NCBI GenBank assembly: GCA_015680685.1
Contig: MNCI01001941.1
Span: forward strand, 672,252 to 736,251
Direction of reading: 5' to 3'
Source of the DNA: Gnetum montanum
Lineage: Eukaryota > Plantae > Gnetophyta
DNA length: 64,000 bases
This document shows, piece after piece, positions 521 to 34,111 of this stretch; positions within the stretch are counted from its first letter, which is position 1, and the number at the start of each line of letters is the position of its first letter. The notes under the pieces were generated by a model. The model was given only the letters and a program-made list of their open reading frames with translations. It ran no database searches and was not told the origin of the DNA. The position numbers and the translations under genes are program-made.

Positions 521-1558
521 CATTCCTAAAAAGTTTCTACCTTGACATGCGTTCTTGCAATCCATGGATCCGTAACTTTACTTTCAAGCTTAATTTTCAC
601 AGCTTCACTCATACTATATTTCTTACTCAAAACTTGGCTTTAAATCTTCAGGGACCAACAATCATAATTAGAACCTAAGTTTTTTGTTCATATAATTAAA
701 AACCTTGAATTATTTTGAGATACAGAGTCTCTTTCCGTGGATAAATATATATCCATGTTAAAATTAAGAACCATTTATAATTCATATACTTTAGTTCAAT
801 GTTAAACCCAAAATTAGTTCAATTTTTAAATAAGCATCCTTGTCAAATTCATGCATTTCACTCAATTTTATTTTGTATTTCATATTATTAATTGTTTGGT
901 TAGTGTTTAATTAATAATTATTTTAGTACAGGGTATAGTTGATATAATTATAATGTGATTATGAGTAGTTTTTATATTGGTAGTTTAACTAGGTTTTTAT
1001 GTAAACTATATAGACATTATACAAATGTTATAATTAGGGAAACGTTAGCATCCTTTGGCTCGTCAATATGCTACCACATATAACTATTGTTTTGTGTATG
1101 TATGTAATTTGCATGAGTAAACTTAGAAGCCAAGAAGACATTGTTACACGAAATGGCAATGTGAGCGTAAAATCTTTTGTTCCTTGAATCTCGTTTGGTG
1201 CCATCGTTGATGTTCCGGTTTACCCAAGAGCACCCGTTGAATCTTGTGATGGCGAACGAATAATGTCTCGAGCATCATTGGTGAAAGCAAAAGGATAACA
1301 TATGTAATTAAGTTTAACTCATGAGAGCTCTTGTTTTGTTAATGTCTCTATTCATCAGTGTAAGAAGAGGAACATGCAACAGGAGGAGATGAGATTGCAG
1401 TGTTCATTAATGAATTTTACGGAATGTTGGCCACAACTCAATAAGACGATCGATCTCACACCCTATGCACAGCTGTGTCTGACAGTCGGAAAAAACATAA
1501 AGTAAAGGTAATAGTGGCTTAGCAGTTAGCACCTATGGCAAAAGCAAAGCATGGTGAC

Positions 1559-2308
1559 TTGGGCGTAGAACCAAAAATTGACGTAATCGATCAGGGCGGA
1601 GTACGAGCACTAGACTGGAACGTAGCATACTTACATGATGCCTCTGTCGTTGAAGGGTGCGATGGACGTCACACTAATCACGCCGAAGCTTTTGAGACGG
1701 CGGATGAGCTGCCCAACACATGAAGTGAAGGTTTGAGAGTCTGTGCGGAACCGCTCGTAGTCAATGTCAATTTCGTCTGGGTCGTACCTCTGGATTATGG
1801 CCGTCAGCGATTCCATTACATTGTTCACTCACGATGCCAAAGACCATGGCATGAACTGCACCTTCACTTTGCCCACACTGTCACCGTCGAGGCTTACAAT
1901 AACGTTCACTTTGCCGCACGGATGTGCTACCTTGAGCACCGCTGGTGTTATTGTTTTGTTTTGCTAGAACATGGCGAACTTTCCACTGGTGGGTTTGTGG
2001 CCATTTCCCTGCATGTAGTCGATGGCGAAGGTGAGGATAAGGTGGATCTCACCCACCTTGGTGTTTACAGGAACATCCTTGAGCTTCACTTCGTTGAACT
2101 GCGAGCCGATGTATTCATGGAACACCATCTTCCATGCACCACAAAGCAACGTATATCTAAACATGGCACATTATTTGTGGTGCATACTGCATACTGCATA
2201 GTTCAAAACTCGATACTTACTTGCGATAGTTGAGGGCACCAAAGTAAGTGAGAAAGCCTCGAAAGCCAGCGCAAGAACCACCATTGTGGAGGATGATGAG
2301 GATGCCAT
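1559..2308 (-). pseudogene. GH18 class IIIb-like chitinase pseudogene, copy 1 (exon 1 2308-2221, intron 2220-2134, exon 2 2133-1559; C-terminus missing)
   Basis: Signal-peptide-like exon MASSSSSTMVVLALAFEAFSLTLVPSTIA, GTAAGT donor, then VFHEYIGSQFNEVKLKDVPVN..IHLILTFAIDY, catalytic-type motif DEIDIDYE, SIAPF, IDYVNFWFYA. In-frame stops at 1964-66, 1829-31, 1631-33 and ~1611; acceptor AG mutated to AT. Confidence 0.9.
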
Positions 2309-2370
2309 ACTTACTGGGAGTTAGCTTGTGAAGCAGGGATGTGGGATAAGAAACAGAAGGGGTGTACTTG

Positions 2371-2380
2371 CCTTATACAG
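2371..2380 (-). promoter_or_regulatory. Putative TATA box of the captured chitinase gene
   Basis: Minus strand CTGTATAAGG ~65 bp upstream of the ATG; the equivalent in copy 2 (~7130-7139) reads CCTATATAAG. Confidence 0.55.
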
Positions 2381-3374
2381 GCTATGGGCAATGCAGAGTG
2401 CCACTACCAGTGGTGGTGCTTCTACATCTCAATTATGTATCACATTCTGGGCCAGCCAAATGATGATTGCATTGCAGGGGAGTGTAGTATAGTAGTCTGT
2501 AGCTAGCTGAAAAGTGACAATGCCATCAAGTTGTTGCATCTCATCTCATTTCATTTTAAAAGGCATGCAGGAGGATTTCCATCTTACAAATGGTTGTGGG
2601 TGCTAGTACCATGACAATGAAGCCCATCCAATTGGCATGTAGGCTCCAGATCTTGCTGCATGGGATGCGCGGGTTTTAGAAGAAGCATGCTGCCATAGTA
2701 TTTGAAGTAGGAATTGAAATTGAAGACATAGGGATGCCAAACTTGGTAGTTTACACCAAGAATAATGGATTGGAATTTGATTCTTTCATATCAATCTATT
2801 ATTAAAATAATTATTTTTAAACATTGTTAAAGTATAAATAAGAAATTTAACTTTGTATTAAGGAGGGAACCTAGCAGACGAGGAATACCTAAAGTTAATA
2901 CCTGAAAGAACACACATCAATTTGAAATCAATTTCTGTTAAAGAATTGTTAAGTAAGGATTCATTGAGCCTATGGCAACTATAAACTATTGGAGTCCATT
3001 GTAGAGCTGTGAAGGTTGCTGCACTAAGGAAACATCAAGGTATAATTGCAGATTAGTTGAAGTCTCCCTTGTAATCCTCATAATCTATGCTTGTATTTGT
3101 GATTTCAATTTGATTTAATCATTAATTTTCATTCTTGAACTTAAGATTAGAAGTTTGGATGAAAATTTATGTTTTTACTTGTGAGTGATAATCATAAGTG
3201 TGGAATTTGATTGGATTTGATTTTAATTAGTTTATGTCTTACTGATCTTTTTGACTTTGGAACTATTTCTCCATGGATACAACTTATGGGTCAATCATAG
3301 ATGAGGTGACAATTTATGTAACAAAGATAATTATTAAAGTAATCCAACACCAAATTTTTCCTAGTTCATCAATC

Positions 3375-3392
3375 TAGCACTATTGCTAGGGA
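3375..3392 (+). other. Primer binding site, tRNA-Asp/Athila type (degenerate)
   Basis: TAGCACTATTGCTAGGGA differs from TGGCGCCGTTGCCGGGGA only by transitions; 3 bp after the LTR end. Confidence 0.75.
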
Positions 3393-5631
3393 GTTCAAAA
3401 GAATCAATCTTCATCAAGGGTTTAGTATATTTTATTTTTATTTTTTTCATATTTCTTTTTAAAATTTAGATTGAATCTTCAAAAAAAGTACACATTCTTT
3501 CTATTTCATTTCATTTTCTTTTGTTTTGTAGCATTAGAAATGGTCTCTCTTAATTATTTTTCTTGTAGGTAGAAAAATTAGAAAAATAAAAAATAAGGAA
3601 AAAGTACAGTCCCAAGAATCAGTCTTCTTAATTCATAAAATTGAGAAAGGTTATAACATAGTTTTAATCAATTACTAGAATAATTAAATTAGTTTGCAAA
3701 ATTTTAGGATTAGTTGCCCATGGATGTGCTAAGGAAGAGTGTGTTTGTTAAATGAACCAAGCAACAAAAATATCCAACATGAATACCATAAGTTATTATA
3801 AATTCTAATCACATACCATATTATATAAAGTAAAAATAATTAAGGGAAAGTCAATACTCTACAACTTTTACCTTGAAAAATGTAAAAGGCAATAGTATTT
3901 TCTATTGTTATTTGGGACTATCAAGAATTTAGTACCATCATGTCTGGAATGTAAAGGAGAAGGACAAATCCTCCTACCTTGAGATAGGTAGGTTTAAACC
4001 AAAAATCCCACTAAGGGTGAGGCTTCTATTAATAAGTATCTTAAATGTTATTATTTTTAAACAGTATTCTTTAAGTACAATGTTCATAAGTCAAGATGGC
4101 TAAATAGCTCAGTATAGGATAATACTTATTATTGTTTGGTTATTATTAAATACTTGCTTGGGTGAGTGACTAAGGTGGAAAGGGTGTGCTATATTGGACC
4201 TAGTTTCTCTAGTGGTAAAGGCATCTACCGATATCAAGTAAGATCAATGCCATGTGAGTAACCCTTAAAAAATGAATTTGGCTCACACAAGAACCTCATG
4301 ATTGAAGCTAGTTAAATATTGAATTTCTTGAGAAAAAAAGAGAAAAGAAAAGAAAAAAATTAAAAAAAAAAAGCAAGAAAATAACAATAAAAGAAAAAAT
4401 GACCCCACAAGAACCTTCAAGCATGAGTTGAGCCACACTTTCACAAGAACCCTACAATTGGGGCGATGCTTCAAGCTCATAATTTTAAGCATCTCACAAG
4501 AATCCTCTTCTATGAGCAAAGTGTTTAAAGGTCAGGCAACAATTACCAATCAATAATAATTCCACTACATTAGAACTAGGGTATAGCACTGGTAGTGAAG
4601 GAGTGACTCTTCCATAGTTAGTATCTTAATAGACACATTCACTTTTAATCATTCCTATTACTCCATTACTTAGTCACTTTGCTTTTTCTTCTTTCTACTT
4701 CTTAGACTATTTTTTTTCTTTTTTCTTTTACCTCATTTTTAACTTTTGCTATTTCTCTTTTTTTTATTTTTGTTGAGTTATCTTACTATTTTTCTTTTGT
4801 GTTGTCATCTCTTTTTACTAGTGATAGTTTTGTGGATGGGTTTTCTTTGTATTTCCCATCATATCTTCCAGAGACATTAGTGGTTGAGATTCCTACTATG
4901 GTGGCCAATGATGGATACTAACACTCGTTCACCCATTGTCTTTGATATCCTTTTAGTCATCTAGATACATAAAACCCAAGGCACTTTTTGCTTTTGGTAT
5001 ATCCTTTGACCATGTTTCCTTTTTCATACTTTGTCTTTGCTAATTAACCTCGGTATGTTTCATACCTTAGTTTAATTAAGGAAGGGATAACCAATTAATA
5101 AATGATATCATAGTAGGGTATAAACAATATGGAAGCTGATCCAAGAACAAGTTAGGGAATGAGTTAGCTATAAGTAATGCATCTTGAATCCTTAAATCAT
5201 AGGAAATGTTTAGACCTTGAGCTTATAAGATGTTCTTGCACCTAATGAAGCAAACCTTGTGAGGTGATGTTAAGCCTAATTAATCCTAGGTAGGGCCATG
5301 CTAACCAAGTTATATGTGGACTCATATCTAATAATAAGAATCTATTATCAATAGAAAAAATAAGCATATGTACATAATTAGAAAAACAATATTTGGACAT
5401 TTGGACAATGGACAAGTTTAATTTTTGTTTTATTATTTTATGATGTTGGATAACGAACATTAATGATATTTTTCTTGTTAAATGTCTATATGTTTTAATG
5501 TATTAAATTTTGGATAGGCTAAAAGGATATCTTGGAATGGCAGTAGCATAATTTTATTTTGGTTACAATTGTGTGCCTATTAATGTTTATTTTATTTCAT
5601 TCATTTTTGCCTTTATGGCCAAGCACTGGCC

Positions 5632-5650
5632 AAAGGCTAGTTGGGGGTTG
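5632..5650 (+). other. Polypurine tract
   Basis: AAAGGCTAGTTGGGGGTTG immediately before the 3' LTR, preceded by a short TGGCCA..TGGCCA palindrome pair. Confidence 0.7.
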
Positions 5651-8191
5651 TGTTTAAACCCAAATTGGTTGAATTTTTAAATAAGCATCTTTGTTAAATT
5701 CATGCATTTTAGTTTATTTTATTTTGTATTTTATATTATTAATTATTTGTTTAGTGTTTAATTAATGATTATTTTAGTAAAGGTTATATTTGATATAATT
5801 ATAGTATGATTCTGAGTAGTTTTTATATTGGTAGTTTAACTAGGTTTATAAATAAAATAAACTATATAGATATTATACATAGATTATAATTAAGGAAACA
5901 TCGGCATCCTTCGGCTAGTCAATATGCTTCCAGATAGTGTGTAAGTAATTTGCATGAGTAAACTTGAAAGCCAACAAGACATTGTTATAGGAAATGACAA
6001 TGTGGCATAAAATCTTTTGTTCCTTGAATCTTGTCGGGTGCCATTGTTGATGTGTCGGTTTACCCAAAAGCACCCGTTGAATCTCGTGATGGTGAACGGA
6101 TAATGTCGAGCATCATTGGTGAAAGTGGAAGGATAACATGCGCAATCAAGTTCAACTCATAAGAGCTCCTATGTTATTAATGTAGTTATTCATCAATGTA
6201 AGAAGAGGAACATGCAACCAGAGAAGATGAGATTGCAGTGTTTATTAATGAATGCTACAGAATGTTGGCCAGAACTCAGTGAGAGGATCGACACAGCTGT
6301 GGCTGATAGTTGGGAGAAACATAAAGCAAAGGCAATAATGTCTTAGCGCCCATGGCAAAAGCAAAGCATGGTGTTCTAGGCATAGAACTAGAAATTGACG
6401 TAATCAATCACGGCAGAGTATGAGCATCAAAGTGCAACGTAACGCGCTTGCACGATGCCTCTATCATTGAAGGGCATGATGGACGCCATGCTAATCAGGC
6501 CAGAGCTCTTGAGATGGTTTCGGAGTCTGCGTGGAACTGCTCGTAGTTAATGTCAATTCTGTCCAGATCGTACCCCTGGATTATGGCCGTCAGCTACTCC
6601 ACTACATTGTTTACCCACGATGCCACCGACGCTGGCACAAACTGAACCTTCACTTTGCCCACGCTGTCACCGCTGAGGCTCACAATGACCTTCACTTTGC
6701 CACACGGATGCACTGCCTTGACTGCTGCTAGTGTTATTGTTTGTCTTTGCCACAACATACCGAACTTTCCGTTGTTGGGTTTGTGGTTGTTTCCTGCATG
6801 TAGTTAATGGCAAAGATGAGGATAAGGTGGATCTCTTCCACGTTGCTACTCATGGGAATGTACTTGAGCTTCGCTCCGTTAGAACTGCGAGCCAATGTAT
6901 TCACGGAACATTATCTTCCCTGCACATTATTCGTGGTGCATACCGCATACTACATAGTTCAAAACTCAATACTTTACCTACGATGGGTGAGGACACCACA
7001 GTGAGCGAGAAAGCCGCGAAAGCCAGCGCAAGAACCACCATTGTGGGGGACGATGAGAATTCCATGCTTACTGGGAGTTGGCTTGGCGAAGCAGGGATGT
7101 GGGATGAGAAACAGAAGGGGTGTGCTTATCTTATATAGGCTATGGGCGATGCAGAGTCAATACTCAGTAGAGTGCCACTGTCGATGGAGGTGCATTATTT
7201 CTGCGTCTCAATGATGTATCCCAGTCTTCGACATGGGCAATGACGAGGCCACCCAAATGATGGTTGCATTGCAGGGGATTATAGTGTAGTAGTGTGTGGC
7301 TGGCTGACAAGTGATAGTGCCATTGCATCACTGCATCTCATCTCATCTCATTTCATTTTAAAAGACGTACAGAAGGATGTTCAAGTTACAAATGGTTGTG
7401 GCTGCTAGCACCACGGCGATGAAGCCCATCCAATTGGCATGCGGGGGCTCTAGAGCTTGCTGCACAGTGTGTGAGGGTTCTAGAAGAAACTTGCTACTGT
7501 AGTATTTGGAGTAGGGATCGAAATCAAAGACAGCAGGGATGCCAAACTTGGCAGTTTGCACCAAAAATAATGGATTGGAATCTGATTATTCCATATCAAT
7601 ATATTATTAAAATAATTATTTTTAAACATTGTTAAAGTATAAATAAGATATTTAACTTTGTATTTAGGGGGAACCACCGAGGACCCAAGGGGTTCAATAC
7701 TTGAGAGGAATACCCAGAGTTAATACCCAAGAGAACCCACATCAAGTTGAAATTAATTTCCCTTAAAGAATTATCAAGTGAGAATTCATTGAGCCTCATG
7801 GCCACTATAGACTATTGGAGTCCATTGTAAAGCGATCAAGGTTGTTGCATTATAGAAATAGCAAGGTAGTATTGTAGATTAGGTGAAGTCTCCCTTGCAA
7901 TCCTGATAATCTATGCTTGTATTTATGATTTCAATTTCATTTAATTATTAATTTTTATTCTTGAATTTAATATTAAAAGTTAGGATGAAAATTTATGTTT
8001 TTACTCATGAGTAATAGTCATAAGTGTGAATTTTGATTGGATTCGATTCTAATTATTTTATGTTTTGATGATCTTTCTAACTTTGGAACCATTCCTCGAT
8101 GGATATGATTCATGGGTCAGACAAGGTGATAAATTATGCAATAAAGATAATTATTAAAGTAATCCAACATCAAAATTTTCCTAGCTCATCA
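5651..8191 (+). repeat. 3' LTR (2541 bp)
   Basis: Starts TGTTTAAACCCAAATTGG, ends CCTAGCTCATCA; diverged direct repeat of 800-3371. Confidence 0.88.
6376..7065 (-). pseudogene. GH18 class IIIb-like chitinase pseudogene, copy 2 (exon 1 7065-6978, intron 6977-6920, exon 2 6919-6376)
   Basis: MEFSSSPTMVVLALAFAAFSLTVVSSPIV, GT..AG intron, MFREYIGSQF, IHLILIFAINY, VKVIVSLSGDSV, DLDRIDINYE, IDYVNF*FYA. Contains frameshifts, stops and a ~30-bp deletion relative to copy 1. Confidence 0.9.
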
Positions 8192-8199
8192 CTCACCTA

Positions 8200-10110
8200 T
8201 CTTGAACCCTACTACATGAAATGGCTAAAATGTAATAACAACATCATAATTGAATGCTTCTTCTACCTTATCTCAACTCTCTATGTCATACACTTCCAAC
8301 CAACCAAGATCTAACTTTGCGCATAAAGATTGATCCAAGTTACAAAGTTACCAATGAAGTCCTTTGAGCTTCTCAAACAATTTCTTAAAACAACTATATT
8401 CAACATAAGAAATTATCTAAGAACACTCGTAAGAGACATGATCATCTTTGTGAGATAGCTAGAGACCCAATGGTAGCAATCATATATAATCCAAAATTAC
8501 CAAAATATTTCAAGATCAATCAATTTTGCCACTATCATTAACTACTTGGCCATGATACCAATTTTTGGTTGGCCTTGTAAGATGAACTATAGAAAATGAT
8601 TGATAGTGGAGAATTTGATTCTAGATGCTCCCAACACCAGCACTAGTAATAACCCATATACTATAGCCACATTCAATGTTTCCAACAAATCTAAACCTAG
8701 TAGGGAGCCATTTGTAATTTGAGTACCTTCTCATAATGGTCAGGTTTCAACTTCCACAAGTATAAGAATTCCTTTTGTTATAAGGGTACCATCATCGAAA
8801 CCTCCCAGAGAGCCCTTCATTATTATATTTTCTTCTTCATTCACAAATAAGCCTATTTTCCATGTTGGCTAATATTCTCCTATTGGCTAATGCATCAACA
8901 TCCTCCCAGTTAAACAACAAAAAGTCTCCATCTAAACAATGAAAACATTTAGCTCCCAAGCCCAAGGCTAAGGAGACTAGCCAATCAAAAGTTTGGAAAG
9001 AAGTAGGTCTATTGAAACTTACTCCAGTCTTAGTTGTACCCATGAGTTCTACTACTCAAATCACATCAACTATCCAACCTAAGAATAGAAGCAAATAAGA
9101 GAAAAGTAAGTGGTAAAAATAAGAAATTGTTAAAATGAAGTCAAATTCCTAGGTAAGGTGGAGAAAGTCAAAGTTCATTTACAAGTGATAAAGACTTCCT
9201 CATACCATGAAATAAGGAAAATTTCTGCTAAAGTTGGAAAAGCACTTCACTAAGCCTTTACGATTTGGTTATGACTTCTCCCACTCATCATGAAGCACTT
9301 GTCAAAATATTAATATCTATCCCTTTGAGTGAAGAGTTTTCTACCAATGAGAAGTCCATCCACTCTATTATCATGCCACCTTCACTTAGGAAGAATTAGG
9401 ACCAACCATGTTAACATTTTATGATAGTGAAGTTAAGATCGATCTATGAAGTGGTAAAGTGTTATGTGCTCCTCTTTTCATAAGTGTATGAGTTGGTCAA
9501 CACAAAGTACATAATGTACATGTGGATGATGAAGTAGCAATGAATGTTATCTCCTTACCCATTATGGAATGTTGAGGTTTGGTTAAGAACATTTATTACA
9601 TCTCCACCTCTATGCTCAAGTCCTTTAATGGATCACAAGTAATAGTGAGAGGGTCCATATCATTAAACTTTATGTCTAGGAAATAATTCATCACATCAGC
9701 TAACTTTCTAGTCATTAAAGAGACACTCAGTTTTAACTTAATATTAGGAAAATCATGGTTGGCTAAGTTGAGAGCACTTTCTTTCCCAATTCACTAGGAG
9801 ATTCATCTATCTTAAGAGGGATGTGAAATTGTTATCCATGGACGTAGCATAGTGCCTTTGTCAATTAATAATGTTAACATCAAACAAGAATCTAAGGTGG
9901 AGTTCTAGGAGGAAGCTCTTGTAACCAACAGTGAAACCAATAACCACCATGAAACCAATGAAGCTAAAGCCAATAACTCTAAATCCTTGAATGAGTCTTG
10001 AGAGGGACTCCAATTTAGCATCATTAATGAAGGGAATAGGGAGTATAAAATCATACAAGAAAGGCCTTACCAGTTTTCTAACTTATCAAAGATTAGGAAA
10101 TAATTATACA
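8200..10110 (+). mobile_element. Degenerate Tat/Ogre-like gag C-terminus and aspartic protease
   Basis: PKYFKINQFCHYH*LLGHDTNF gag motif (~8500-8570); PLFISV..VHNVHVDDEVAMNVI (~9470-9555); FNLILGKSW (~9732-9760). Homologous to 52300-54230. Confidence 0.75.
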
Positions 10111-10299
10111 ATCAATATGTTATATACCTTTTTCTTGTATATATATTGTTGCATGTTTACTTAATAACATTGTTTACAAATGTGACTTGCAAGTTTGCAC
10201 TTTATTTCATAATTTTTATTTTATTACATCATATTTCCGAGTTTTACTTTCTAGCCTTATTGTGTGTTGTTGTTTTAACTCATAGCCTAAATCTACTAT

Positions 10300-17769: not shown

Positions 17770-20456
17770 AGACATTGTGACCATTGTGACCACTATCTAT
17801 GGATGGTTTTATCCTACTAATTTCCTAGTGATCAATGTGGAGAACCACAAAGGGGACTTCCCCATCATAATGGGAAGGGCATGGATAAGCACCATTGATG
17901 TAAAAATGGACATAAGATATCTTTCCCTAAAAATATCTAAAGAAAATTCATTTAGGAAGATCAAGAAGAAGTAAGTTCCATGCATTGTGTGTAATGATAC
18001 AAGGTGCAATTGTGTGCAGAAACTTTGAATAGTGAAATGAGCATCCATCTCTTCATGCCAGTAGTATGCATAAGAAGTTGATATTCAAAGGTGTTTGTAT
18101 GTAGTAGCCATAAACAAGAGAGCACCTAGTGGTTGAGTGTTGATCTTGAAAGTAGCACACTTTGCATAGAACCAATTGAGAGCTTGACATGCACATATGT
18201 CACAGGCATAAATGAACCAAAGTAGGTTTATCACCAACTCTTTGATAATGCAGATGATGATAACTACTAAGGAGAGTTGAGAATTCTTGAAATTTCAAGC
18301 AAGGGCCCATTAAACTAAAAACTCTAGTAGTAAGCATGGAATATGTGTTCTTAAAAAATGGAAAGTTGTTCATAATCAATGCAAATCTTGCTTCAAAACA
18401 AAAATAGATGTTGTTAAAAGTGGTTGAAAAATGATTAGCAGCCTTTTCTTGGTCATATCCAGAACTCACACAAATTAATCCTAGGATATGCTAGCATTAC
18501 ATCTATACTAACTCAATTGTAAAGCCAAAGAGGCAGCCACAGAGGTAGTTGAACCCCAAATTAAAGTAGATCATTAAGGAGGAAATCAAACAACTCCTCA
18601 AGGTGGGGTTCATTTTTCCCATTGTGGATAGTGAGTGGGTTACTCCACTCATGATTATGTCAAAAAAAGGTGGCAAGTGGTAGGTATACATTGATTTTCA
18701 ACTACTAAACATGAAAACATTCAAAGACCATTTTCCATTGTCATTTATTGATCAGATGTTAGCCATAATATCTGGGAATTGCTATTAAAGGTTTTTGGAT
18801 GGTTATAATGGCCATAATCAAATCAGGATCTTGCTAGAGGACCAAGTAAAAATAACATTTACAAGTCCTTGGGGGCCTTTTTCATATCATAAGATGCCTT
18901 TTAATCTATGCAATGATTCTACTACATTCCAATGCTTGGTCTTGAGCACTTTTTAACAATAGATCGGTATTGGTATGAAAATATTCATGGATGATTTCTC
19001 TACTTATGAAGCTACATTTGAACAAGCTTTGGACTACCTTGAGTAAGTGCTAAAATGATATGTTGAAATAAACTTGTGGCTCAATTGGTAGAAGAGCCAT
19101 CTGATGGTCCAGGAGAGCATTGTGTTGGGGCACAAAATATCATAAGCAAGAATTAAAGTTGATCTCAAAAAAATAAGGGTCATTCAAGGAATAACCTGTC
19201 AACCAAAAACTATCAAAGATGTTCAGTCATTCCTTGGGCATACTAGCTACTACCAATGATTTATAGAGAATTTATTTAAGATTGCAAAATTGTTGGTTGA
19301 GCTAACAAAGAAGGATGATTAATTTGTCTAGACCATAGAATGTGAAAAAGCATTCCAGCAACTAAAAGAGAAACTTGTAGAGATTCCAATTCTACAAGCA
19401 CTTGACTAGTCCAGACCATTTCATGTCATGATGGATGCATCAAATTATACCTTGGAAGTTGTGTTTATATAGATGGATGATAGGAAATTTCCATATTACA
19501 TCCACTATGCAAGTTGAAGCATTGTAGATGCAAAATTGAACTACACCACCATAGAAAAAAAATTGATGGTAGTAGTGTTTTCTCTAGAGAAGTTCAAGCA
19601 TTATGTGCTTGGATACAAATTATTTGTGCACATGGATCATAGTGCCATTTTCTTCTTGATGAAAAAGCCAACAGTGAGCCCATGTGTCATATAGTGGCTG
19701 GTGATCTTATAGGAATTTGTTCTTACAATGGTAGATTGAATGGACACCGAGAATGTCGTTGCTAATCACTTATGTTGGTTGAGATGGAACAACAAAGAGG
19801 AGAAAAGCCCACTATCTAATCTATTTCTTAATGAACTTCTCTTTGTCAAGGTTGTAATTGAACAATTGCCCAATGAGCCTAAATGGTATGATGGTATTCT
19901 CACCTATCTACTCATCCAAGAGATGCCACAAAGGTTGGACCACTAGAAGAAACAATAGTTTATTTACTAGGTAAAATGCTTCATGAAGATCAATAGACAC
20001 CTTTATAAGGTGTGTGTCAATGGCCTAGTTCATTGGTATGTCCTTGATGATGATCAACTTGATGTTCTCTAGGATGCTTATGAAGGTCCTTGTGGAGGCC
20101 ACTATGCTGGGAGACACATGGCCATTAAAATCCTAATGATAGGGTATTATTGGCCAGCAATCTTCAGGGATTCTCATCAACATGTCTACTCTTGTGAACA
20201 CTACCAGCAAGATGGTGGAATGATTGTTAGAATGGAGAGATCCCAATAGTGGATCCAACTATTGAAACCATTCAACATCTAGGGCATTGATTTCATGGGT
20301 CCTATCATGTCCATGTCAAATGGAAAGGCATACATCATAGTCACTATTGAATATTGTACAAAATGGGTAGAAGTAGTAGTCATCACCAACTATACATCTT
20401 TTATTGCTCTTTGGTTTGTACAACAAAATGTTATAAATAGGTTTGGTGTGCCACAT
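17770..20456 (+). pseudogene. Element B pol (protease, RT, RNase H, integrase N-part)
   Basis: PIIMGRAW; SEWVTPL, KDHFPLSFIDQML, FLDGYNGHNQI, IFMDDFS; MDASNY, NYTTIEK; GPCGGHY, GIDFMGP, EYCTKWVE. Many stops. Confidence 0.92.
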
Positions 20457-21319
20457 TGATGAGCAGTGAGGTACCCCCATGCCCAACCATACAAATCATA
20501 AGCATTCACATGCGATTCAGTGAAATTCTGCAAACTTTAATTACCAAGTACACTAGAGCTAAATAGTGTGTGAGTGTTCATTGTCTTCCTAGTCCCACTT
20601 GTGAAATGCAACTATATGATTAAGTGTGACTAAGGCGTAAGATTTTTATTATTTTGTGTTTTATCAATTTACTTTCCTAGAACAAGAATGAAAGTGAGAG
20701 TAATTAAGTGCTAAGTAAGCTATGGTCTAATCTAGCCTAACACAAGTAACCATTTCTAGTTCCTAGACACATCCTAAACTTTGTGTGAACACTACTGGGT
20801 TGTCAAATGCTAACCATTTCTGAGCTGCCAAGTGTCACATGTATGTTTAAAAGGGTTGTGCTTGTGTATTTTAATGAGTTTCTTAATTGATTAAAATTAA
20901 TTGATGCATGAATAATGTTAATGTAAAGTACATGAAATCACAATATATAAATGCATAAGAAAGAAAAGTCTTAAGTGCTGCAAGGATGAATCAAAGAGCT
21001 CATCTTTATTGCCAACACAATGGTGTGTTTAGGTACATTAATGCTTGAATAAAGATCTGATCACACTTAGACCTCCTACTACGGGCACTTGGAAAATATT
21101 CTAACTCTTAAATGAACAAACTACAAGAGTTTTTCTACTTAACTACCAAAAACTACTCTCAATTGTGTGTCTAGCAGCTGTATTTATAGACTTAGAAGTA
21201 ACCCTACGATATCGAATGCACGATATTACATCTTGGATCATGATATCGTGTACCTAATATCGTGTACCCAATATCATGGCCACTCCGATATTGGAGCATA
21301 TGAAAAACATGATTCATAA
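20457..21319 (-). repeat. Element C 3' LTR
   Basis: Direct repeat of 29655-30524; minus-strand TATAAATA at ~21181-21188. Confidence 0.92.
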
Positions 21320-23399
21320 TATTCCCACAACTGAATGAAAACTCATCCTCAAGTACAAAAGAAGAAGAATAAGTCCCTTACACAATATATTAGGAGGGAT
21401 GGAAAGTTTGACTTGACATGCAAAATGACATCAAGGAAACAAACAAATATAGAAGTGCCAAAGCATACAACATTACAATTGTGTACAAAATTGGGAATTT
21501 ATGATAATAAGAAAGAACACCCTCAGATCCAATGGACATCCAACCCCTCTTGTCAATAGAAGAATGAGGGAGAGGTAGAAGAGATCTAGCGGTCATGAAC
21601 AATCTTCCATGAGTGATATTGTTGCATCCTCCTTGGTGAAGATAGTCCTCCTTCCAGTCCATGCTCTCCACTACAATCACAACAAAATCAAGGATTAGTA
21701 TATAAAGTGTAACATATAGTGGCTAAATACCTTTTCTCATTAGTGATTTTATCTAGCCAAATTGTGATTGTGATAGATTGGTTGCTTGATAATGTTAGTG
21801 GAAAAACTAATGAATGGGTTAAGTAAGAGAAGTGGTCTATAAAATTTAGAAAAAGTTTAACACAAGGAATACTGGAAAGAGGATATAAGAATTTAAAACA
21901 ATAAAAAGAAGGAATTCACTAAAAATAGTTGTGAAGATGCATACAATTGGATGAAATTGATGGGATAAATAGAAAGAATTCGATTGTAACAATGTCTAAG
22001 GGTAAAGAACTTAACTTAATGAAATCAAAAGATATGCAAGTGGGTCCTCCACAAAGTAGGAATAGGNTCAAAAGATATGCAAGTGGGTCCTCCACAAAGT
22101 AGGAATAGGCCTTTTAAGCCCATGCATAGCTTTAAACCAAGGATTTCGTGGCCACCATGGATGATAAATGGTTACAGAAAGTTAAGTATGAAAACCTAGA
22201 AGTAACTGACTGAGAAACCTAACACATCAAGCTAGAACATTGAATCAAAATACGAAACTAGTAGTGAGGTGAGGCATGAAAAGCATAGATGGATAAGAGA
22301 GAGAATGCAATGGAATTCCTAAATATGGTCACATGAAATCCCTTGTAGATTTTGTGATTAAATGACTTAGTAGAATCCATCCTCAGTCCAGAGAAAAACC
22401 AACCACTTTCAATGACTTCGCATTGACATTCTAAGACTAGTCCATCCCTTGAGATACAAGAATGCTCCCACAAAATAACCACCATTCAAAATTGGAGAGA
22501 AAGTAGGAAGTTCGAAAGTGCCTTAGTTAGAGGAGACAAGACAAGTCCCATAACTAGTGTTTGTAGCCCTTTTATCTGGTCTAAGGGATGTGCTTTGAAT
22601 TTTTTTTGAGTGGGAACCACACCATGCAAAGACCCATGCATTTTTGCATTTATTTTGTCCAAGGGGTGTGCTTTGAATTCTCATTTTTTTTCATGAGGAT
22701 CACACCATGCAAGGACTTATTTGACTTCCTATTGTGGAATTAACCAAAATGGTGAGAAGATCTTGAGAACACTCCTGCACATAGGAAAATAGAAAAGCAC
22801 AAAGAATCTCACATCCCTTTAAAGCCACACCCTATTCAAACCTTTGATTCTTTCCCAATTTTGGAAACTACACAAGTTACCAATTTATTAAGGTTGCATT
22901 AATGAAAAAGGGACTGCATGTTTCTAAAATGAGGAAAATCATAGAGTATGTGGATGGGTGGATGACGTGGACTCATTTCCTATTACATGAAAAGAAACCA
23001 TGTCCCAGTTGTTAGTAACAACATTCAAAGTCAAAACTAGACATCAACAATCAAATTACAAATGACACCTTATTAGTAGAAAGAGTAGAGAAACACACCA
23101 AACACAAGAAAATATAAAAGAAAGTAAAATATTATGTAATAAATATCATATATATGAACAATGGTGTTAAAAAAAACTTAGAAAAGATTAATAACTTGAA
23201 AAAAAAGAGATGTAAAACAAAGAATATGAAAATAAAAAGTTGTAAAACCAAAAATGTGTAAAACAAAAAAAGCCAAAAGACTGAGGAGCCTTGTAAAGTG
23301 TTGGTGTGGGTGGCCATCTTTCCCAAAACTAAGTTATAAGGGGGAGATCTGAAAGATTGAGCATGGTTGTTCATCTAGCAAGGTATTTATTGAGTTGGT

Positions 23400-26300
23400 T
23401 GGCTTGGGCTCATAGAAAGGCTTCAATTGTTGGGTGTTGACTAATTATTTCTTATTTGGGCTATCAGATTTATAGATAATAATGGTCCCAAATGGAAAAT
23501 TATCATCAATATTGTAAGGTCCTTCCCACAACATTTGAAATTTGGTTCGTTGGGGTATATGTGCAAGATTCTAGTAGAGGACCTTGTCTCCTAGTTGAAA
23601 CTTAACTTTTCTTATTTTGAGGTCATGAAATTTCTTGTTGAATGCCTTATTCATTTTGTTGGATGATAGGGCCATTAACCAATTTTCATCTAGCATGTTA
23701 AAGTTCATTAATCATTCCTTCTATGTGAGACTTAGATTTAGGTCAAGGTCACAGGTTGTAGAGAGTGTATGAAGCTTGGATTAGAAGGGCAGTGTTAGTA
23801 GTTTTCTGTACACAAGTTCATAGGGAGAATAACCTATGGGAAGCTTCCATGTGGAGTGATAGGTCCAAAGGGAATCATTTAATTTGGTGCTCTAGTCCCT
23901 TCGGTATTTGCTAATGGTCTGTGTTAGAATTTTTGTAATCACCCAATTAGTCACCTCAACTTGACCATTGGCTTGGGGGTGATATGGTGTTGTGAGTTTG
24001 TGCTCAACCTCCAAGTGCTACATAAGTTTTCAGAAAGTGGCACCTAGAAAATGAGTTCCATTATTAGAAATTAATGCATGAGGCATATCAAACTTGCTTA
24101 TGATATTTTTTTGTACAAACTAAGTAGCAGTAGTAGATGTATAGTCAGTGAAAACTGCTGCTTCTACCCACTTAGTGCAATAGTCAACTGCAACTATGAT
24201 ATATGCCTTTCCATTTGATAAACATGTGATGGAACCCATAAAGTCAATGTCCCAAATATCGAATGGCTTAAGAGCTTGAATCCATTGTTGTGGCCCCTCC
24301 ATTCGAGCTATCATTCCACCATCCCTCTGAAAATGATCACAAGAATTGATGAATTGATGTGCATCCTTGAGGTTTGTTGGCTAGTAATATCTCACCATGA
24401 GGATTTTTATGGCCATGCATCTCCTAGCATAATGGCCCCCACATGAGCCTTCATGAGCATCTTGGAGAATGCACAGTTGATTCGTGTCAAGGACACACTA
24501 GAGTACTAGGTCATCAGGATAGACTTTGTAAAGGTTCCGATTAATTTCCATGAAATGCTTGACCTGGTGAAGAAAGTATTGTTTCTTTCTGGTGTCCAAT
24601 CCTTGTCACACTTCTTGCTTGAGCAGATAAATGACGATGATGTCATACCATTTTGGTTCATTAGGCATTTGTGCATTAATAGCCCTTGTAAGAAGAGATT
24701 TGTTAGGAAACTGATCAGATATGGGGCTCTCTTTCTCCTTGTCATCCCATCTTAGCTATGATAAGTGATTAGCAACTACATTTTTCACACTTTTTCGATC
24801 TACCATTGTGATATCAAACTCTTGCAAAATCATGAGCCACCGTATGACACAGGGCCTCACTATTGGTTTATTCATTAGAAACTAGATGGTGTTATGATCT
24901 ATGTGTGTGAACACTTTATAGCTAGGCACATAGTGCTTGAACTTCTCTAATGCGAAAACCATTGTCATCAATTCCTCTTTCATGGTGATGTAGTTCAGCT
25001 TTGCACTTGAAATACTTCAACTTGTGCGATGAATGTAATACGGACATTTTTGATGAGCCAATTGCATAAGCACTGCCCTCAAAGCATAATTTGATGCATC
25101 TATCATCACATGAAATGGTCTGGACCAATCAAGTGCTTGTAGAATTGGGGTTTCCAAAATATTTTACTTTAGTTGTTGAAATGCTATTTCACATGCAAGG
25201 GTCTAGAAAAATTATGCATCTTTCTTTATTAATTCAACCAATGGCTTGGTGATTTTGGAAAAATTCTCAATGAAGTGTCAACAGTAGCTAGTATGACCAA
25301 GGAATGATCACACTTCTTTAACTATTTCTGGTTGATGGGTTATTCCTTGGATGACCCTTATTTTTTCAAGGTCCACCTTGATTTTTGCTTTTGAGATATG
25401 GTTCCCCTAGACTATGCCTTCCTGGACTATAAGATGGTTCTTTTGCCAATTAAACTGAAGGTTTGTTTCGACACATCTCCTCAACACCTACTCAATATGG
25501 TCCAAGGCTTGCTTGAATGTAGCTTCATAGGAAGAAAAGTCATCCATAAAGACTTCTACCCCACTACTGATTTTTTGTTGGAAAATGCTAAGGACTAATC
25601 ATTGAAATGTGGCTAGGGAATTACATAGATTGAATGACATTTGATGGTAAGCAAAAGTCCCCCAAGGACTTGTGAAAGTTGTCTTTGCCTAGTCCTTTGG
25701 TGGAATCCAAATTTGGTTATAGCCACTATAACCATCTACACAGTTGTAATAGCTATGCCCAGAAATGGTTTTTAGCACTTGGTCGATAAAAGACAATGGA
25801 AAATCATCTTTGAAAGTTGCCATATTGAGTAGCTGGAAGTCGATGCACACTCGCCATTTGTCTTCTTTACTGGGCATGATCACAAGTGGACTAATCCACT
25901 CACTCTCTATGATAGGGTAGATGAATCCCACCTTGAGGAGTTGCTCAATCTCCTCTTTGATAATCTACTTTAATTTGGGATTCAAACATCGTTACAACTA
26001 TCATTTCGGCTTAATGGTGGGGTTGATGTATATTTGGTGTTAGCATATTCTTGGATCTATACTAGTGAGCTTGGAATATAACTATGCAAAGGTTGTTGAC
26101 CATTTTTCCACAAACTTCATCAAAATTTTCTTTTGTTCTATAGCAAGCTTGGCATTAATAATGATTGAACTTCCATTTTTCAAGAACACATACTCCATTT
26201 TGGCTGGTAGTGTCTTTAATTCAAGGGGTTCTTATTTAAAATTATCAAGAATCATCATTTATTCCTTTGAAGAGCTAATGCTGAACTTGCTTGAGTTCAT

Positions 26301-26950
26301 CCATACTTGCAACATATTCATACATTAGGCCCTCAATAGGTTTCATGCACAATGTACTGCTGCTAGAATTAGTTGTCAATGACTAGGTGCCTTCTTTTCT
26401 TGTGGCTGCCGCATATAGACATCTTTGGATTTTAGCTTCTAGTGCACACTGCTTACATGCAGAGATAGATGTTCGCTTTATTGACCATAGCTTTTGCACA
26501 CAATGACACCTTGAATCATTTTACATGATACATGTAATCCTCTTCTTCTCAATCTTTCCAAATTCATTTTCTTTAGATATCTCCAAGGAAAGATCTCTAA
26601 TGACCATTTTGGCATCAACGGTGCTTAACCATGCCCTTTCCATAATAATTAGGAAGCCCCCTTGCAGTTATCCACCTTGATTACTAGGAAGTTGACAAGA
26701 TATGACCACCCACAAATGGTGGTTATGATGTCTTCTACCAGTCCCAATGGAACAGTGATGGACTAGTCTACTAGTTCTAGTCGGATGCTACTCTTCTTCA
26801 AGGGAGGAAGGTTCCACATCATTTGCATCCCATGCAAGATTAGATTAACACTAGAACTAGAGTTGAGAAAGGCTTTACAAGGCTCATTCCCAGCAATTTT
26901 CAAATATACTAGGGGACTTCTAGGATCAGCTAAGTTCCTAGGTAGGTTAC
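23400..26950 (-). pseudogene. Element C pol
   Basis: AFLNSSSSVNLI (protease); ESEWISPLVIMP, WRVCIDF, DGYSGYNQI, VFMDDF (RT); RNase H at ~24770-25200; FDIWDIDFMG, VDYCTKWVEA, PYHPQANGQVE (integrase). Confidence 0.92.
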
Positions 26951-26989
26951 TAGCTCGAATCCAATCAGATACAACATGGGTCAACATTA

Positions 26990-29000
26990 TAGTATGGATT
27001 CAAGAGGGGTTTTGATTTGAAGGAAAATTAGATAAAAGTGAGATAGAGAAAGGTGGAGAAGTAGGGTTACCAACCACTAATGTATCTAAGGGCTTTGGTA
27101 AGCTATGAAGTTGAAAGAAGGATCTTTTCTTTGATCATGGTTCTGAATTTCTTGGTTGGTTAACTGGTTGTAGAGTAACTGCCCTCATAGCATTTCTTTG
27201 CTATAGTTGTGTAAGAAATTCACCCTGCATGGATGGAGTAGGTGGTAGCTATGTAGGATATGAAGGAGTAGGTGCAGGAATAGGAGGAGCATGAAGATAG
27301 TAGGTGGCATCCCTCCTTGGATAGGGTAGTTGGTACACTTCAGGAGGGTAGTGGTGAGGTTGGTAAGTGGCAACATGACCAGAGGAGTCCCATGGAGATG
27401 AAGGTTGCTGAACATAGTAACCATAGGGATCTGGTTGTCGGTAAGGGTACTACTATCTTGGAAGTGCCAATACTTACAATTGTGGTTGCTATCACTGCTG
27501 GTACAGTTCATAGGGTTCTAGTGAAGTTTTTCTTAGATAATACTTCTATGTTTGGTAGAACTATCAAGCGTTGCCTTATGAATAAGGTAATCGTTTGGGT
27601 GTTTGCCTTTGTGCAAGTTATGGATGTAAGGCATACACTCTAGATTCTTGAAAGTGTGACACAATTTGCAAACATCTGTTAGGATGTTCATACTGGCAAA
27701 TGTCACACCTGGCATCATCATCTAAGTCACTATCTACAACCATCTCTATCATAGCCATTTTACCCTTACACTTAGATATGGCTCATTCAACTTCCTTATT
27801 TCTCCAGTGCTCATGCTCACAACTTTGCTCCTTGGACTCTTCAGCAATTTTTAAGATAGCCTGAAACTTGTTGTTCATAGAGTTCCATAATTGGTTAACC
27901 TTAGCTGTGATTTCAAATTGAAATTTCTGGAATGGCAAGGTTTTCTAGTTAACCACCTCATCTCTGATTAACTCATCTTCACTGTCACAAAATTAAACAC
28001 CCCTTTTGTAGATAGAAGGATTCTTATTGTATTCCTATGCACTTTCTAGCTTTCTTAATTCTTCCTCCTCCTTGGCTACCTACTCAATTAACTTTTGGAT
28101 CTAACAGATGCTTAACTCTATCAATCTCCATTAGGCATAGATGCTAAGGGTTTTCCTTGTTTCAACCTGCAACCTTTCTATGATATGGTGAAGTTGATCA
28201 AGCTGAGAGTATCCATGGCTAGGACACCTATGCAATAGAGAATAATAACAACTAATAGTGGATCCAAGGGCTCTTGGTTTTTTTGTTTCCACCCTTGGAT
28301 TAGCTTCCTTAGATTGGACACTTGGGAGTGTATTTGATATTTGTCATTGAACAATTCCAACATCATACTTCACCACCTAATTGATTTTGGCTCCAAGGAC
28401 TAGTACCAATTTTCTACTTCCTTAATGAGTATCCTTAGAAATAATTTCAAATTCTACTAGCCATTCTCAATATTCTACAAGGAACATGCATCTTGGAAGT
28501 CCTAAAGATGATTCTTTGGATCAACATCATAGCCTCCCTCAAAACAAAGGATGTTGTTCATGTTCAACCTCCTTATTCTACTATCCTTTACATGCTTTGT
28601 TGGAATTCTCATAGCCTCTACAATGTTTAACATGTCCTGAGTGGCAAGTAGAGGTTCATCAAGGCCATGGTGATGGTGCCCATGATGTTTTCTACTATCA
28701 TGGTGATGCGTCTCCCTGGATTGCCCACACCTTCAGTCATGACTGGCCCAATAGTCCCTTTTGTTGTTTTGGTCCTATCAATCACCTCCATCACAATTAT
28801 GCCCTTTATAGCCATGATCTAAGCCAAATGAAGAAGAAGAAGAAGATGATGAAGGGGAAGAGAAAGGAGAACTTGCTCCATGCTGATGCTTATCATCCTT
28901 TCTTCAATGATCACGACCATGATCACGATCATGACCTCCTTTTTTCCTCTTATCATGACTTACCCCTCTAGATCCATTTTTTTGTTGGATCCATTTTGAC
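26990..29000 (-). pseudogene. Element C gag region
   Basis: Retrotransposon-gag-like segment (~28200-28560: FEGGYDVDP..HL, EKWY*SL, FNDKY) and Pro-rich linker; disrupted. Bounds approximate. Confidence 0.7.
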
Positions 29001-29654
29001 TAGAACCTGGATTATGAATTTTGGATTGCACATTCTAGTTGAGGCCCCTTGAACAAAGTCAAAGAGAGGAGAATCACAAAAGAAAAGGCCCCCAGAGAAG
29101 TGTTTGCCTCCATCCAATGGGCCAAGTAGAGGTGGAAAGGTATTTGATCCCATGCCCTTCACAATCTCATGTTGGTACTCTAGCTGATGATCCCTTAACC
29201 TTTGTGCTTCAGTGGGATGACAATCCCTTGAGTTGAGATCTCACATCTTGTGCTCTCCATGAAGATGTTGAAGTCTTTGTCATGTGAGAATTAGTTGGAG
29301 CATCACTGAAACAAATCAATCAAGTGGCAACACAATGTTTCCTTCAATGTCACACAACTGTAGCATTTCATCTTGATGTAAGATGAAGGTGAAGTCTGGT
29401 ACATACTCATCGAGATGAGCATATACCACCCGGTATTACTAAGGCACCTAGTCTACTCTAGGTGGAGAAAGGCTTCTATGAGAAGAAGACATTTTATGTT
29501 AATGAATTTATATGAAATGTGTGGTTAAGATTCAATTTAATTGTAATAATAATTTTTTTTTACAAGATTTGACTCTTAAAATTCAAACAATGAGGTTACT
29601 AAGTTTTACTTAGTTTAGAACACGTAGAACTAAAGTCTTCGAAAATGATGTCAA

Positions 29655-30524
29655 TGATGAGCGGCAAGGTACCCCAATGCCCAACCATACAAATTACAGG
29701 TGTTCACATGTGATCTAGTCAAATTCCATAAACTTTAATTACTAAGTATGCTAGAGCTAAACAATGCATGCATGTTGTTTGTTCAGTTTCTTCCAAGTCC
29801 CACTTGTGAAATGCAATTGTATGGTTAAGTGTGACTAAGGTGTAATATTTTTATTATTTTGTGTTTTATTAATTTACTTACCTAGAACAAGAATGAAAGA
29901 GAGAGTAATTAAGTGCTAAGTAAGCTATGGTATAATCTAGCCTAACACAAGTAACCATTCCTACTTCTTGGACACATTCTGAACTTTGTGTAAACACTAC
30001 TGGGTTGTCAAATGCTAACTGTTTCCGAGCTACCAAGTGTTACACGTATGTTGGAAGGGGTTGTGCTTGTGTATTTTAATGAGTTTCTTAATTGATCAAA
30101 ATTAATTGTTGCATGAATAACATTAATGTAAATTGCATGAAATCACAATATATAAATGCATAAGAAAGAAAGTCTCAAGTGTTGCAAGGATGAATCAAAG
30201 AGCTCATCTTTATTGCCAACACAATGATGTGTTTAGGTACATCAATGCTTGAATAAATATTTTATCACACTTAGACCTCTTGTTGCAGGTAGTTGGAAAA
30301 ATATTCTAACTCTCAAATAAACAAACTACAAGAGTTTTGCTACATGACTGCCAAAAACTACTCTCAATTGTGTGCCTAGGAGCTGTATTTATAGACCCAA
30401 AAGTAACCCTACGATATCGAATGTACAATATTGCATCTTGGGACATAATATTGTGTACTTGATATTGTATACCCAATATCATAGTCACTCTGATATCAGA
30501 ATGTATGAAAAACATGATTCATCA
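29655..30524 (-). repeat. Element C 5' LTR
   Basis: TGATGA...TCATCA termini; pairs with 20457-21319. Confidence 0.92.
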
Positions 30525-30529
30525 CATGT

Positions 30530-31210
30530 GCATTAATTTTTGAAAATGGAACTCACTTTATAGGAACTACCTTTTGGAAGCTCATGTAATGCTTAGGGGT
30601 TGAACATAAACTCACAACACCTTACAACCCCCAAGCCAATGGTCAAGATAAGGTTACCAATAGGGAAATCATAAAGATTCTAACAAGAACTATCAGCAAA
30701 TATAGGAAATATTGGAGCATGAAACTCAACGATGCCCTTTGGACCTATTGCTCAACATGGAAACTTCCTATAGGCTATTATCCCTATGAGCTGGTGTATG
30801 AAAAATTACCAACACTTCTTATTCAATCCAACCTCTGTACACTTTCAACAACCTATGACCTTGACCTTGACTTGAGTCTATCAAAAAAATAAAGATTAAT
30901 AAATTTCAACTTGCTAGATGAAAATTGATTGGTGGCCCTATCATCTAACGAGTTGCACAAGGCATTTGTCAAAAAGCACCATGACCTTAAAATTAGAAAA
31001 GTCAAATTTTAATTGAGAGATAAGGTCCTCTACTGGAATCCCATACATGTACCTCAACAAACTAAGTTTTCATCATTGTGGGAAGGACTTTATATAAGTT
31101 ATGAAATTTTTCCTTCTGGGGCCATGATGATCTACAAACTTGAGAGACCAAACAAGAAATAGTTGGTCAACATATAACAAGTCAAAACTTTCCATAAGCA
31201 TATGCCAGCT
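30530..31210 (+). pseudogene. Element B integrase C-part
   Basis: ENGTHF, TTPYNPQANGQ, LNDALWTY, PYELVY, LWEGLY; resumes after the C insertion. Confidence 0.9.
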
Positions 31211-33253: not shown

Positions 33254-34111
33254 TGATAAATCATGTTTTGACATGCTTCAATATTAGATATGTGATATTA
33301 AAGCCATGATATCGAATACCCGATTTTAGGCCCCAAGATGCAATGTTGAATATTTGATATTGTAGGATATATTCCACCCTATAAATATAGCACTTAGGCT
33401 CATGATTTTCATATAGTTTTTTTTGTTAATTTTTGCAAAGTAATGAAGTTCTTGCAATTTAGTCATTTCAGAGTTAGAATATTTTTGAGTACCCATAGTA
33501 GGAGATTGACTATGTATAGGAGTTTATTTGAGCACTAATGTACTTGAGCATAGTAGTGTGACGGGAATAAAGATGAGCTCTTTTGATAATCCTTGTAGCA
33601 CTAAGAATATATTAATGTTTTTCTAATGCATTTATTGTTCATGCACTTTACTTTAATGCATGTTAATTAGGCAGTTAATTTTCAATTGTTAATGAACACA
33701 AGCACAACCACTTTGAGCATACGTGTAGCACTTGGTAACCCAAAAATGCTTAACATTTGGTAACCTAGCAGCACTACATGAATTGAAGATACGTCTAGGG
33801 AGTGGGAACAAGTACTTGTGCTAGGCTAGCTAGGTAGTAGATAAATTAAATATCAAATTACTTTACCCTCTATTTTTGCTCTAGGTGATTAAATTTATAA
33901 AACATAAAATGATAAAAATAATATAACTTAGTTGCACTTAACCATAAACTTGTACCTCATGAGTGGAATTGAGAAGACAACAATCATTTTGATTAGATTT
34001 CACTTCCTAGAACTAGTGTACTTGGGAACTTAATGTCTATGGAGTTCATAGATCATGTGTACACAATTCTGATTCATATGGTTGGGTGTAGGGGTACCTT
34101 ACTGCTTAACA
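33254..34111 (+). repeat. Element B 3' LTR
   Basis: TGATAAATCATG...CTTAACA, preceded by PPT-like TTAGTTGTGGGGTA; related to the reverse complement of the C LTRs; TATAAATA ~33380. Confidence 0.9.

Follow-up and report, generated by a model that had tools for sequence, protein, structure and literature searches.

Two direct repeats with the same gene fragment

The 64-kb stretch of the Gnetum montanum genome analysed here (contig MNCI01001941.1), which we call the window, is AT-rich and repeat-rich, and its longest open reading frame (ORF) comprises 166 amino acids. At 800-8191 two long direct repeats enclose an unrelated interior, and each repeat holds, on the minus strand, a fragment of a gene for a GH18 (glycoside hydrolase family 18) chitinase. 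The arrangement is very probably one old, decayed insertion of a long terminal repeat (LTR) retroelement of the Athila group (Ty3/gypsy), lying on the plus strand and carrying an antisense GH18 fragment in each LTR.

800-3371, plus strand: 5' LTR, 2572 bp, TG...CA; aligns with 5651-8191, homology ends at both boundaries
3372-5650, plus strand: non-coding interior, 2279 bp, unique in the window
5651-8191, plus strand: 3' LTR, 2541 bp, TG...CA; aligns with 800-3371

A blastn comparison of the window with itself aligns 802-3374 with 5654-8194 at 78.8% identity over 2649 columns, without extension past the ends of the alignment. In a global alignment that included 150-nt flanks, the repeats 800-3371 and 5651-8191 are 84.5% identical at 2466 ungapped sites, corresponding to 15.5% differences and a Kimura two-parameter (K2P) distance of 0.178. 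Identity drops from 0.84-0.90 within the repeats to the random level of 0.36-0.37 within ~100 nt outside, and the two 100-column bins that straddle the repeat boundaries show values of 0.56-0.64. Both repeats start with TG (at 800 and 5651) and end with CA (at 3370-3371 and 8190-8191), and beyond TG/CA the unit has no terminal inverted repeats. A repeat running on past its TG and CA ends had been named beforehand as a sign against an LTR element; past the CA, homology comprises 3 nt more only (ATC/CTC), which we consider trivial, and then falls to random identity.

A truncated GH18 chitinase gene lies antisense in both repeats

The chitinase-related part of the repeats has the layout of a gene that was cut off within its second exon.

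1562-2377, minus strand (antisense to the element): GH18 chitinase-2-like fragment of the 5' LTR; TATA box 2371-2377, ATG 2306-2308, exon 1 to 2221, intron 2220-2134, exon 2 2133-1562
6379-7135, minus strand (antisense): GH18 chitinase-2-like fragment of the 3' LTR; TATA box 7129-7135, ATG 7063-7065, intron 6977-6920, exon 2 6919-6379
800-1561, plus strand: LTR segment past the fragment's truncation point; homologous between the copies, no Pfam match, no protein homologue

Behind a TATA box and an ATG come a signal-peptide-like exon and a GTAAGT splice donor; the intron spans 87 nt and keeps the phase of exon 2, and the first two thirds of the catalytic domain follow it. The intron acceptor of copy 1 (5' LTR) is mutated and now reads CAT. 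In copy 2 (3' LTR) the intron has been shortened by a 26-nt deletion, and its CAG acceptor is intact. A family hidden Markov model (HMM) built from ~100 full-length homologues matches copy 1 with an E-value of 5e-65 and copy 2 with 7e-31. The match covers positions 28-219/220 of 305 and ends in both copies at the same F-Y-A codons (1562 and 6379, respectively). In a profile search the fragment showed 48-50% identity to chitinase-2-like proteins from many plant orders over HMM positions 28-220. For a 68-residue piece, an exhaustive search gave a best identity of 62% and 55% for the top-scoring match, and its PDB matches are plant class III/GH18 chitinases and narbonin. An antisense ORF of 166 residues and one of 88 residues in the non-chitinase part of the LTR returned no homologue.

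The last ~85 residues of the domain (HMM positions 221-305) are absent in all frames from both repeats, the interior, the flanks and the rest of the window. As the two copies share this break, and the sequence past the truncation point is homologous between them, the truncation is older than the separation of the copies. The point lesions, on the other hand, all differ between the copies. Copy 1 contains four in-frame stops (1964-1966, 1829-1831, 1631-1633 and 1610-1612), and copy 2 has at least three frameshifts as well as stops at 6594-6596, 6427-6429 and 6388-6390. One stop affects the same Trp codon in both, which made it a candidate for a shared lesion; this was ruled out, since one copy reads TAG there and the other reads TGA. 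The catalytic motif is kept as D-I-D-Y-E in copy 1 and reads D-I-N-Y-E in copy 2. Both chitinase copies are thus pseudogene fragments and not functional GH18 genes.

The sequence-only reading had recognised chitinase homology in both LTRs, and the family model agrees with it. It had also taken the cargo for a gene, assigning to it ~1.7 kb of chitinase locus (1045-2760). What is found instead is a fragment that breaks off in both LTRs at an identical codon (~220 of 305), of which 1562-2377, or ~0.8 kb, is recognisable. The fragment stops 994 nt short of the LTR's 3' end, and its position is compatible with a location within U3, the upstream part of the LTR.

The fragments have decayed neutrally

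Between the two copies, the differences amount to 0.161 at codon position 1 and 0.167 at codon position 2, compared with 0.136-0.155 in the non-coding parts of the repeats. Since these positions diverge at the rate of the flanks, the fragment was non-functional from the insertion onward; since their separation, the two copies of it have undergone neutral drift. A naive ratio of nonsynonymous to synonymous substitution rates (dN/dS) between the copies is 0.35. We rejected this value as a sign of selection, as it is an artefact of GC-rich third positions that decay via transitions: codon position 3 differs by 0.26, and transitions account for 40 of its 47 changes. The GC content at third positions (GC3) of the captured coding sequence (1562-2134, 6379-6919) is 0.68 within a region of 33% GC, third-position G and C have been lost almost only by transitions, and half of the CpG sites in this coding sequence are not the same in the two copies. 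The pattern looks like a methylation-decay footprint that mimics purifying selection in the naive dN/dS.

These data bear on the possibility that the copies are two members of a tandem GH18 array which remained functional after duplication and decayed later. Chitinase-2-like genes are widespread in plants, the copies have no identical point lesion, and the naive dN/dS would suit such a history. However, the same 85 C-terminal residues are missing in both copies, with the same junction, the divergence at codon positions 1 and 2 equals that of the flanks, the low dN/dS stems from the transitional decay of third positions, and the Athila signals described below are present. We therefore give a tandem array almost no credence.

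Athila-type signals at the repeat boundaries

According to the ATHILAfinder preprint, the 5' junction of ATHILA elements consists of the LTR terminus TATCA, an AT-rich spacer of 3-6 nt and a tRNA-Asp/Asn primer binding site (PBS). FIDEL from peanut (Arachis) has a 19-nt tRNA-Asp PBS and a target-site duplication (TSD) of 5 bp, and the paper describing it gives ttgggg as the conserved polypurine tract (PPT) core of Athila-like elements. In Diaspora and Calypso from soybean (Glycine), the LTR is followed by the PBS at a distance of 5 bp. The locus has corresponding features at both ends of the interior.

3372-3374, plus strand: spacer between LTR end and PBS; ATC, AT-rich, 3 nt; the LTR terminus before it is CATCA
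3375-3393, plus strand: decayed tRNA-Asp primer binding site, Athila type; 12/19 against the FIDEL PBS
5638-5650, plus strand: polypurine-tract region; Athila core TTGGGG at 5641-5646

Transitions (G>A or C>T) make up six of the seven mismatches between 3375-3393 and the FIDEL site, and five of these transitions fall in its three CpGs. Decay of this CpG type is expected, because about half of the CpG sites differ between the two LTRs. Only 2 of the 127,964 positions of the window (both strands, 128 kb), 3375-3393 being one of them, reach this fit to the PBS. Judged by its sequence, we assign 3375-3393 as a PBS by homology, in decayed form, rather than as a functional site.

At the other end of the interior, the TTGGGG core lies 4 nt ahead of the 3' LTR start at 5651. 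It is part of the 9-mer AGTTGGGGG at 5639-5647, 3 nt ahead of the 3' repeat, and the related AGTTGTGGG is found just before the 3' LTRs of two Athila-like elements elsewhere in the window, E1 and E2, which are described further below. Counting both strands, the window holds four instances of the class AGTTG[G/T]GGG, three of them directly before an LTR start (this element, E1 and E2). When the 26-nt PPT/LTR junction is compared in register with that of E2, 16 of 26 bases agree, a score that is reached by 2.5e-4 of the window positions. The LTR ends show a similar likeness. The last 8 nt of the 3' LTR, GCTCATCA, are the same as both LTR ends of E1, and the 5' LTR differs by one base. This 8-mer occurs five times in the 128 kb, three of them at these LTR ends. 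Over the last 14 nt, the 3' LTR and the E1 3' LTR agree at 10 positions, as do 3e-4 of all positions. Free local alignments of the LTR and interior ends with E1 and E2 were not significant; the match holds only for the in-register termini. Similarity confined to the termini is the pattern expected of a different family that would use the enzymes of the same lineage. Membership in the Athila group is assigned from these cis signals only, by which the element would function like an Athila derivative; it has no gag-pol or env-like region for a placement by reverse transcriptase (RT) phylogeny. Rfam and tRNA scans found nothing.

In these respects the sequence-only reading of 800-8191 holds. Its LTR retroelement with TG...CA direct repeats is upheld by the 84.5% identity and the sharp ends; its PBS at 3375 is recovered as a decayed tRNA-Asp site, with 12 of 19 identities and six of seven mismatches being transitions; and its PPT at 5632 is confirmed by the TTGGGG core at 5641-5646 and the 9-mer at 5639-5647.

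Further sites in the window resemble a tRNA-Asp PBS. The sole other equal fit, at 62831-62849 (plus strand), does not visibly follow an LTR end and lies in GC-rich sequence that resembles an ORF; chance or a relic of a related element may account for it. A second decayed site occupies 49237-49255 (minus strand; 11 of 19 identities and six transitions), and only ~590 nt downstream of it, also on the minus strand, lies the fourth of the Athila-type PPT motifs (48643-48651). The region 48643-49255 may represent an element that has suffered extensive deletion, or else a non-coding Athila derivative of very small size.

Points against an LTR insertion and DNA-level alternatives

Several observations weigh against the interpretation as an Athila-group insertion. 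An exact TSD was looked for at the ends of the element, and none was found.

795-799, no strand: candidate left target-site duplication, TTCAA; 3/5 against the right candidate
8192-8196, no strand: candidate right target-site duplication, CTCAC; 3/5 against the left candidate

No second copy, solo LTR or LTR fragment was detected in the other 56 kb of the window, either with blastn or with nhmmer using a profile of the two copies. The PBS identification depends on accepting six transitions, and the 12-nt core of the site recurs at 62832-62843 in a context unlike an LTR junction, so that the statistic given above may be softer. The terminal similarities were spotted by eye before they were tested statistically. 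Finally, beyond the terminal 10-25 nt the LTR bodies and the interior have no similarity to E1 or E2. For the first of these points, the divergence of the LTRs provides a measure: at 0.155 differences per site, a match of exactly 3/5 between TSDs, as observed in the canonical 5-bp register, is expected in ~15% of true insertions. The TSD of E1 also scores only 3/5, and its own PBS position is similarly decayed, with 10 of 19 identities and seven transitions. Conserved stretches of the LTR were absent from metagenome contigs in two exact-pattern scans.

The generic criteria pointed to a different origin, namely a local duplication at the DNA level, tandem or insertional, of an already dead chitinase pseudogene together with its flanks, in which case the LTR look would be coincidental. 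The TGG that a generic PBS criterion calls for is absent from the 40 nt that follow the 5' repeat. The purine content before the 3' repeat is 13/19, which is not significant, as at least 12/19 is found in 23.5% of 19-nt stretches. The repeated unit itself resembles a gene locus, with ~1 kb upstream, the gene fragment and 0.76 kb downstream. The missing exact TSD, the missing gag/pol and the lack of another copy in the window would suit such a duplication as well, and according to the authors of LTR_retriever, whose filters include the TSD, tandem gene families are one of the origins of false LTR pairs. However, arbitrary breakpoints would not put a PBS, a PPT core and the E1 8-mer at their canonical places, the homology stops at the unit boundaries, and the spacer does not represent an insertion, with flanking TSD, into a tandem junction. 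After comparison with E1 and with the published Athila junctions this explanation was dropped, and we regard it as improbable.

Two insertions of a fragment-carrying DNA transposon of the Helitron or Pack-MULE type were also considered, as such elements often capture gene fragments with introns and promoters. Terminal inverted repeats are missing from the unit, as are a 9-bp TSD and, on both strands, TC...CTRR ends, and the interior between the copies is bordered by a PBS and a PPT; a DNA transposon is hence very unlikely. A clean insertion into the old repeat on the right was likewise rejected: this repeat begins 81 nt past the 3' LTR and is without a left partner. The two copies of this dispersed repeat (8273-10263 and 52310-54423) are 58% identical at the nucleotide level over 2 kb and 33% identical over 491 residues in tblastn (E 4e-54). 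Their conservation is coding-like, their pieces have no Pfam match, and both start at the same point.

The interior contains no coding trace

In agreement with the sequence-only reading, the element is without gag and pol today. The interior has no ORF of at least 80 residues, none of ten pieces gave a Pfam match, and six-frame tblastn detected no similarity to gag/pol remnants or to the rest of the window; for the similarity searches it was analysed as 3372-4325 and 4389-5650. No remnant of gag, protease, RT or integrase is left in these 2.28 kb at either the DNA or the protein level, while E1 and E2, which are of similar age, still keep remnants of the gag/pol type. Owing to this difference, we lean towards an interior that was already non-coding at insertion, somewhat ahead of one that lost gag-pol later.

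The second course implies that the same LTR element was autonomous when it inserted and that its gag-pol was afterwards deleted and the interior overwritten. The insertion is old (K2P 0.178), the whole window is decayed, and non-autonomous ATHILA elements derived by deletion are common. Against this stand the complete lack of coding remnants just described and the preservation of both PBS and PPT at the ends of the interior. An autonomous element at the time of insertion is thus possible, though we consider it the doubtful case.

A proposed origin of the chitinase-bearing element

The fragment and both of its junctions are common to the two LTRs. For an Athila-group insertion it follows that the fragment was present in the template before the last reverse transcription and has been retrotransposed at least once. 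As non-transcribed promoter sequence and an intron are retained, it probably originated from genomic DNA and not from mRNA. We propose that a genomic chitinase fragment was taken up, as DNA, by one of the LTRs in a progenitor copy, and that the next reverse transcription would have copied it into both LTRs. The antisense orientation would have let the intron survive the passage through RNA, which is possible only in this orientation. Priming and integration may have been carried out by Athila-type enzymes, for example those of the family at 17-34 kb, whose cis signals match those of the element; judged from these motifs, the match fits the use of that lineage's enzymes. At a rate of 1.3e-8 substitutions per site per year, as used in dating plant LTRs, the K2P distance of 0.178 would place the insertion ~7 million years (My) ago.

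A further-reaching view is that 800-8191 is a surviving member of a non-coding family of Athila derivatives, defined by a chitinase fragment with promoter and intron lying antisense in the LTR. We consider this rather unlikely. If true, the fragment would have been doubled at each transposition and left behind in every solo LTR, and convergent transcription from the LTR and chitinase promoters could yield antisense or small RNA against GH18 genes.

Neighbouring retroelements and other repeats in the window

The region 17789-34987 is a nest of one Athila-like family, in which E1 sits inside its sister copy E2.

20457-30524, minus strand: E1; LTRs 20457-21319 and 29655-30524, 868 bp, 87% identical; integrase and RT-like remnants
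17789-20456, resuming at 30525, plus strand: E2; pol part 17789-20456, 3' LTR ~33255-34110
34112-34987, minus strand: E3, a third fragment, adjoining E2
24123-24380 and 61877-62167, minus strand: integrase-core remnants
40023-40621, 43530-43831 and 46209-46814: direct repeat of ~0.6 kb in three copies, 70-76% identical

The insertion of E1 is proven, because the flanks of E2 adjoin each other at the homologous site (~24078) in the interior of E1 itself. The sequence-only reading had proposed Athila-like elements at 17-37 kb as helpers that mobilise the chitinase-bearing element. Their Athila-like nature and their matching cis signals stand, but they have no ORF longer than 166 residues. All retroelements of the window are dead, and no local copy is able to act as a helper now. 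The ~0.6-kb repeats at 40023-46814 are possibly LTRs of further decayed elements. A single N is present at 22067 and another at 63122.

Comparison with known systems

With the Athila/Calypso group (ATHILA, FIDEL, Calypso and Diaspora) the element shares a tRNA-Asp PBS a few nt after the LTR, an ...ATCA terminus followed by an AT-rich spacer, and the TTGGGG core. Its LTRs of 2.54-2.57 kb are close in length to those of Diaspora (2524 bp). In contrast to the members of this group, it lacks gag, pol and an env-like region, and its LTRs hold a host gene fragment. Nor are its LTR bodies related to those of the window's Athila-like copies. Non-coding families are found among ATHILA elements (ATHILA4a and some ATHILA0), and together with the large retrotransposon derivatives (LARDs) they resemble the element in having cis signals without coding capacity and in presumably being moved by related autonomous elements. 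They are described without host-gene cargo, however, whereas for the chitinase-bearing element one copy is known.

The captured part is 48-50% identical to the plant GH18 chitinase-2-like and class III-like proteins, a group including the tulip-bulb chitinase and narbonin, and keeps the DxDxE motif in copy 1; unlike these proteins, it lacks the last 85 residues and contains multiple stops and frameshifts. Capture of gene fragments by plant LTR retrotransposons is common, with 425 elements in maize, 672 captured genes in rice and 1343 in sorghum. Bs1 and these captures are similar in that a host gene fragment resides in an LTR retroelement and often evolves like a pseudogene. In Bs1, however, the captured pieces are encoded within the element, while here the fragment is found in the LTR, twice per element, antisense and with promoter and intron. 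In the textbook cases and the surveys consulted, host cargo is likewise described as part of the element and not of its LTRs. Foreign sequence built into an LTR and then propagated is known from BARE-2 and Veju, whose chimeric LTRs were made by template switching and include foreign transposable element sequence; there it stems from another retroelement or is of unknown origin, and not from a host protein-coding gene. Our literature search returned no report of a host gene fragment with promoter and intron inside an LTR, nor of chitinase cargo.

As a single copy that is ~7 My old and dead, the element has a biological weight that hinges on whether a family exists. For annotation, it is of note that filters based on generic PBS, PPT and TSD criteria would discard it, and that it was recognised by lineage-specific motifs and by taking CpG decay into account. 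Compared with cargo in the interior, a fragment borne by the LTR occurs in two copies per element, is retained by solo LTRs and adjoins the element's own promoter. Being antisense with a retained intron, the fragment represents a natural counterpart of the logic of engineered retrotransposition reporters.

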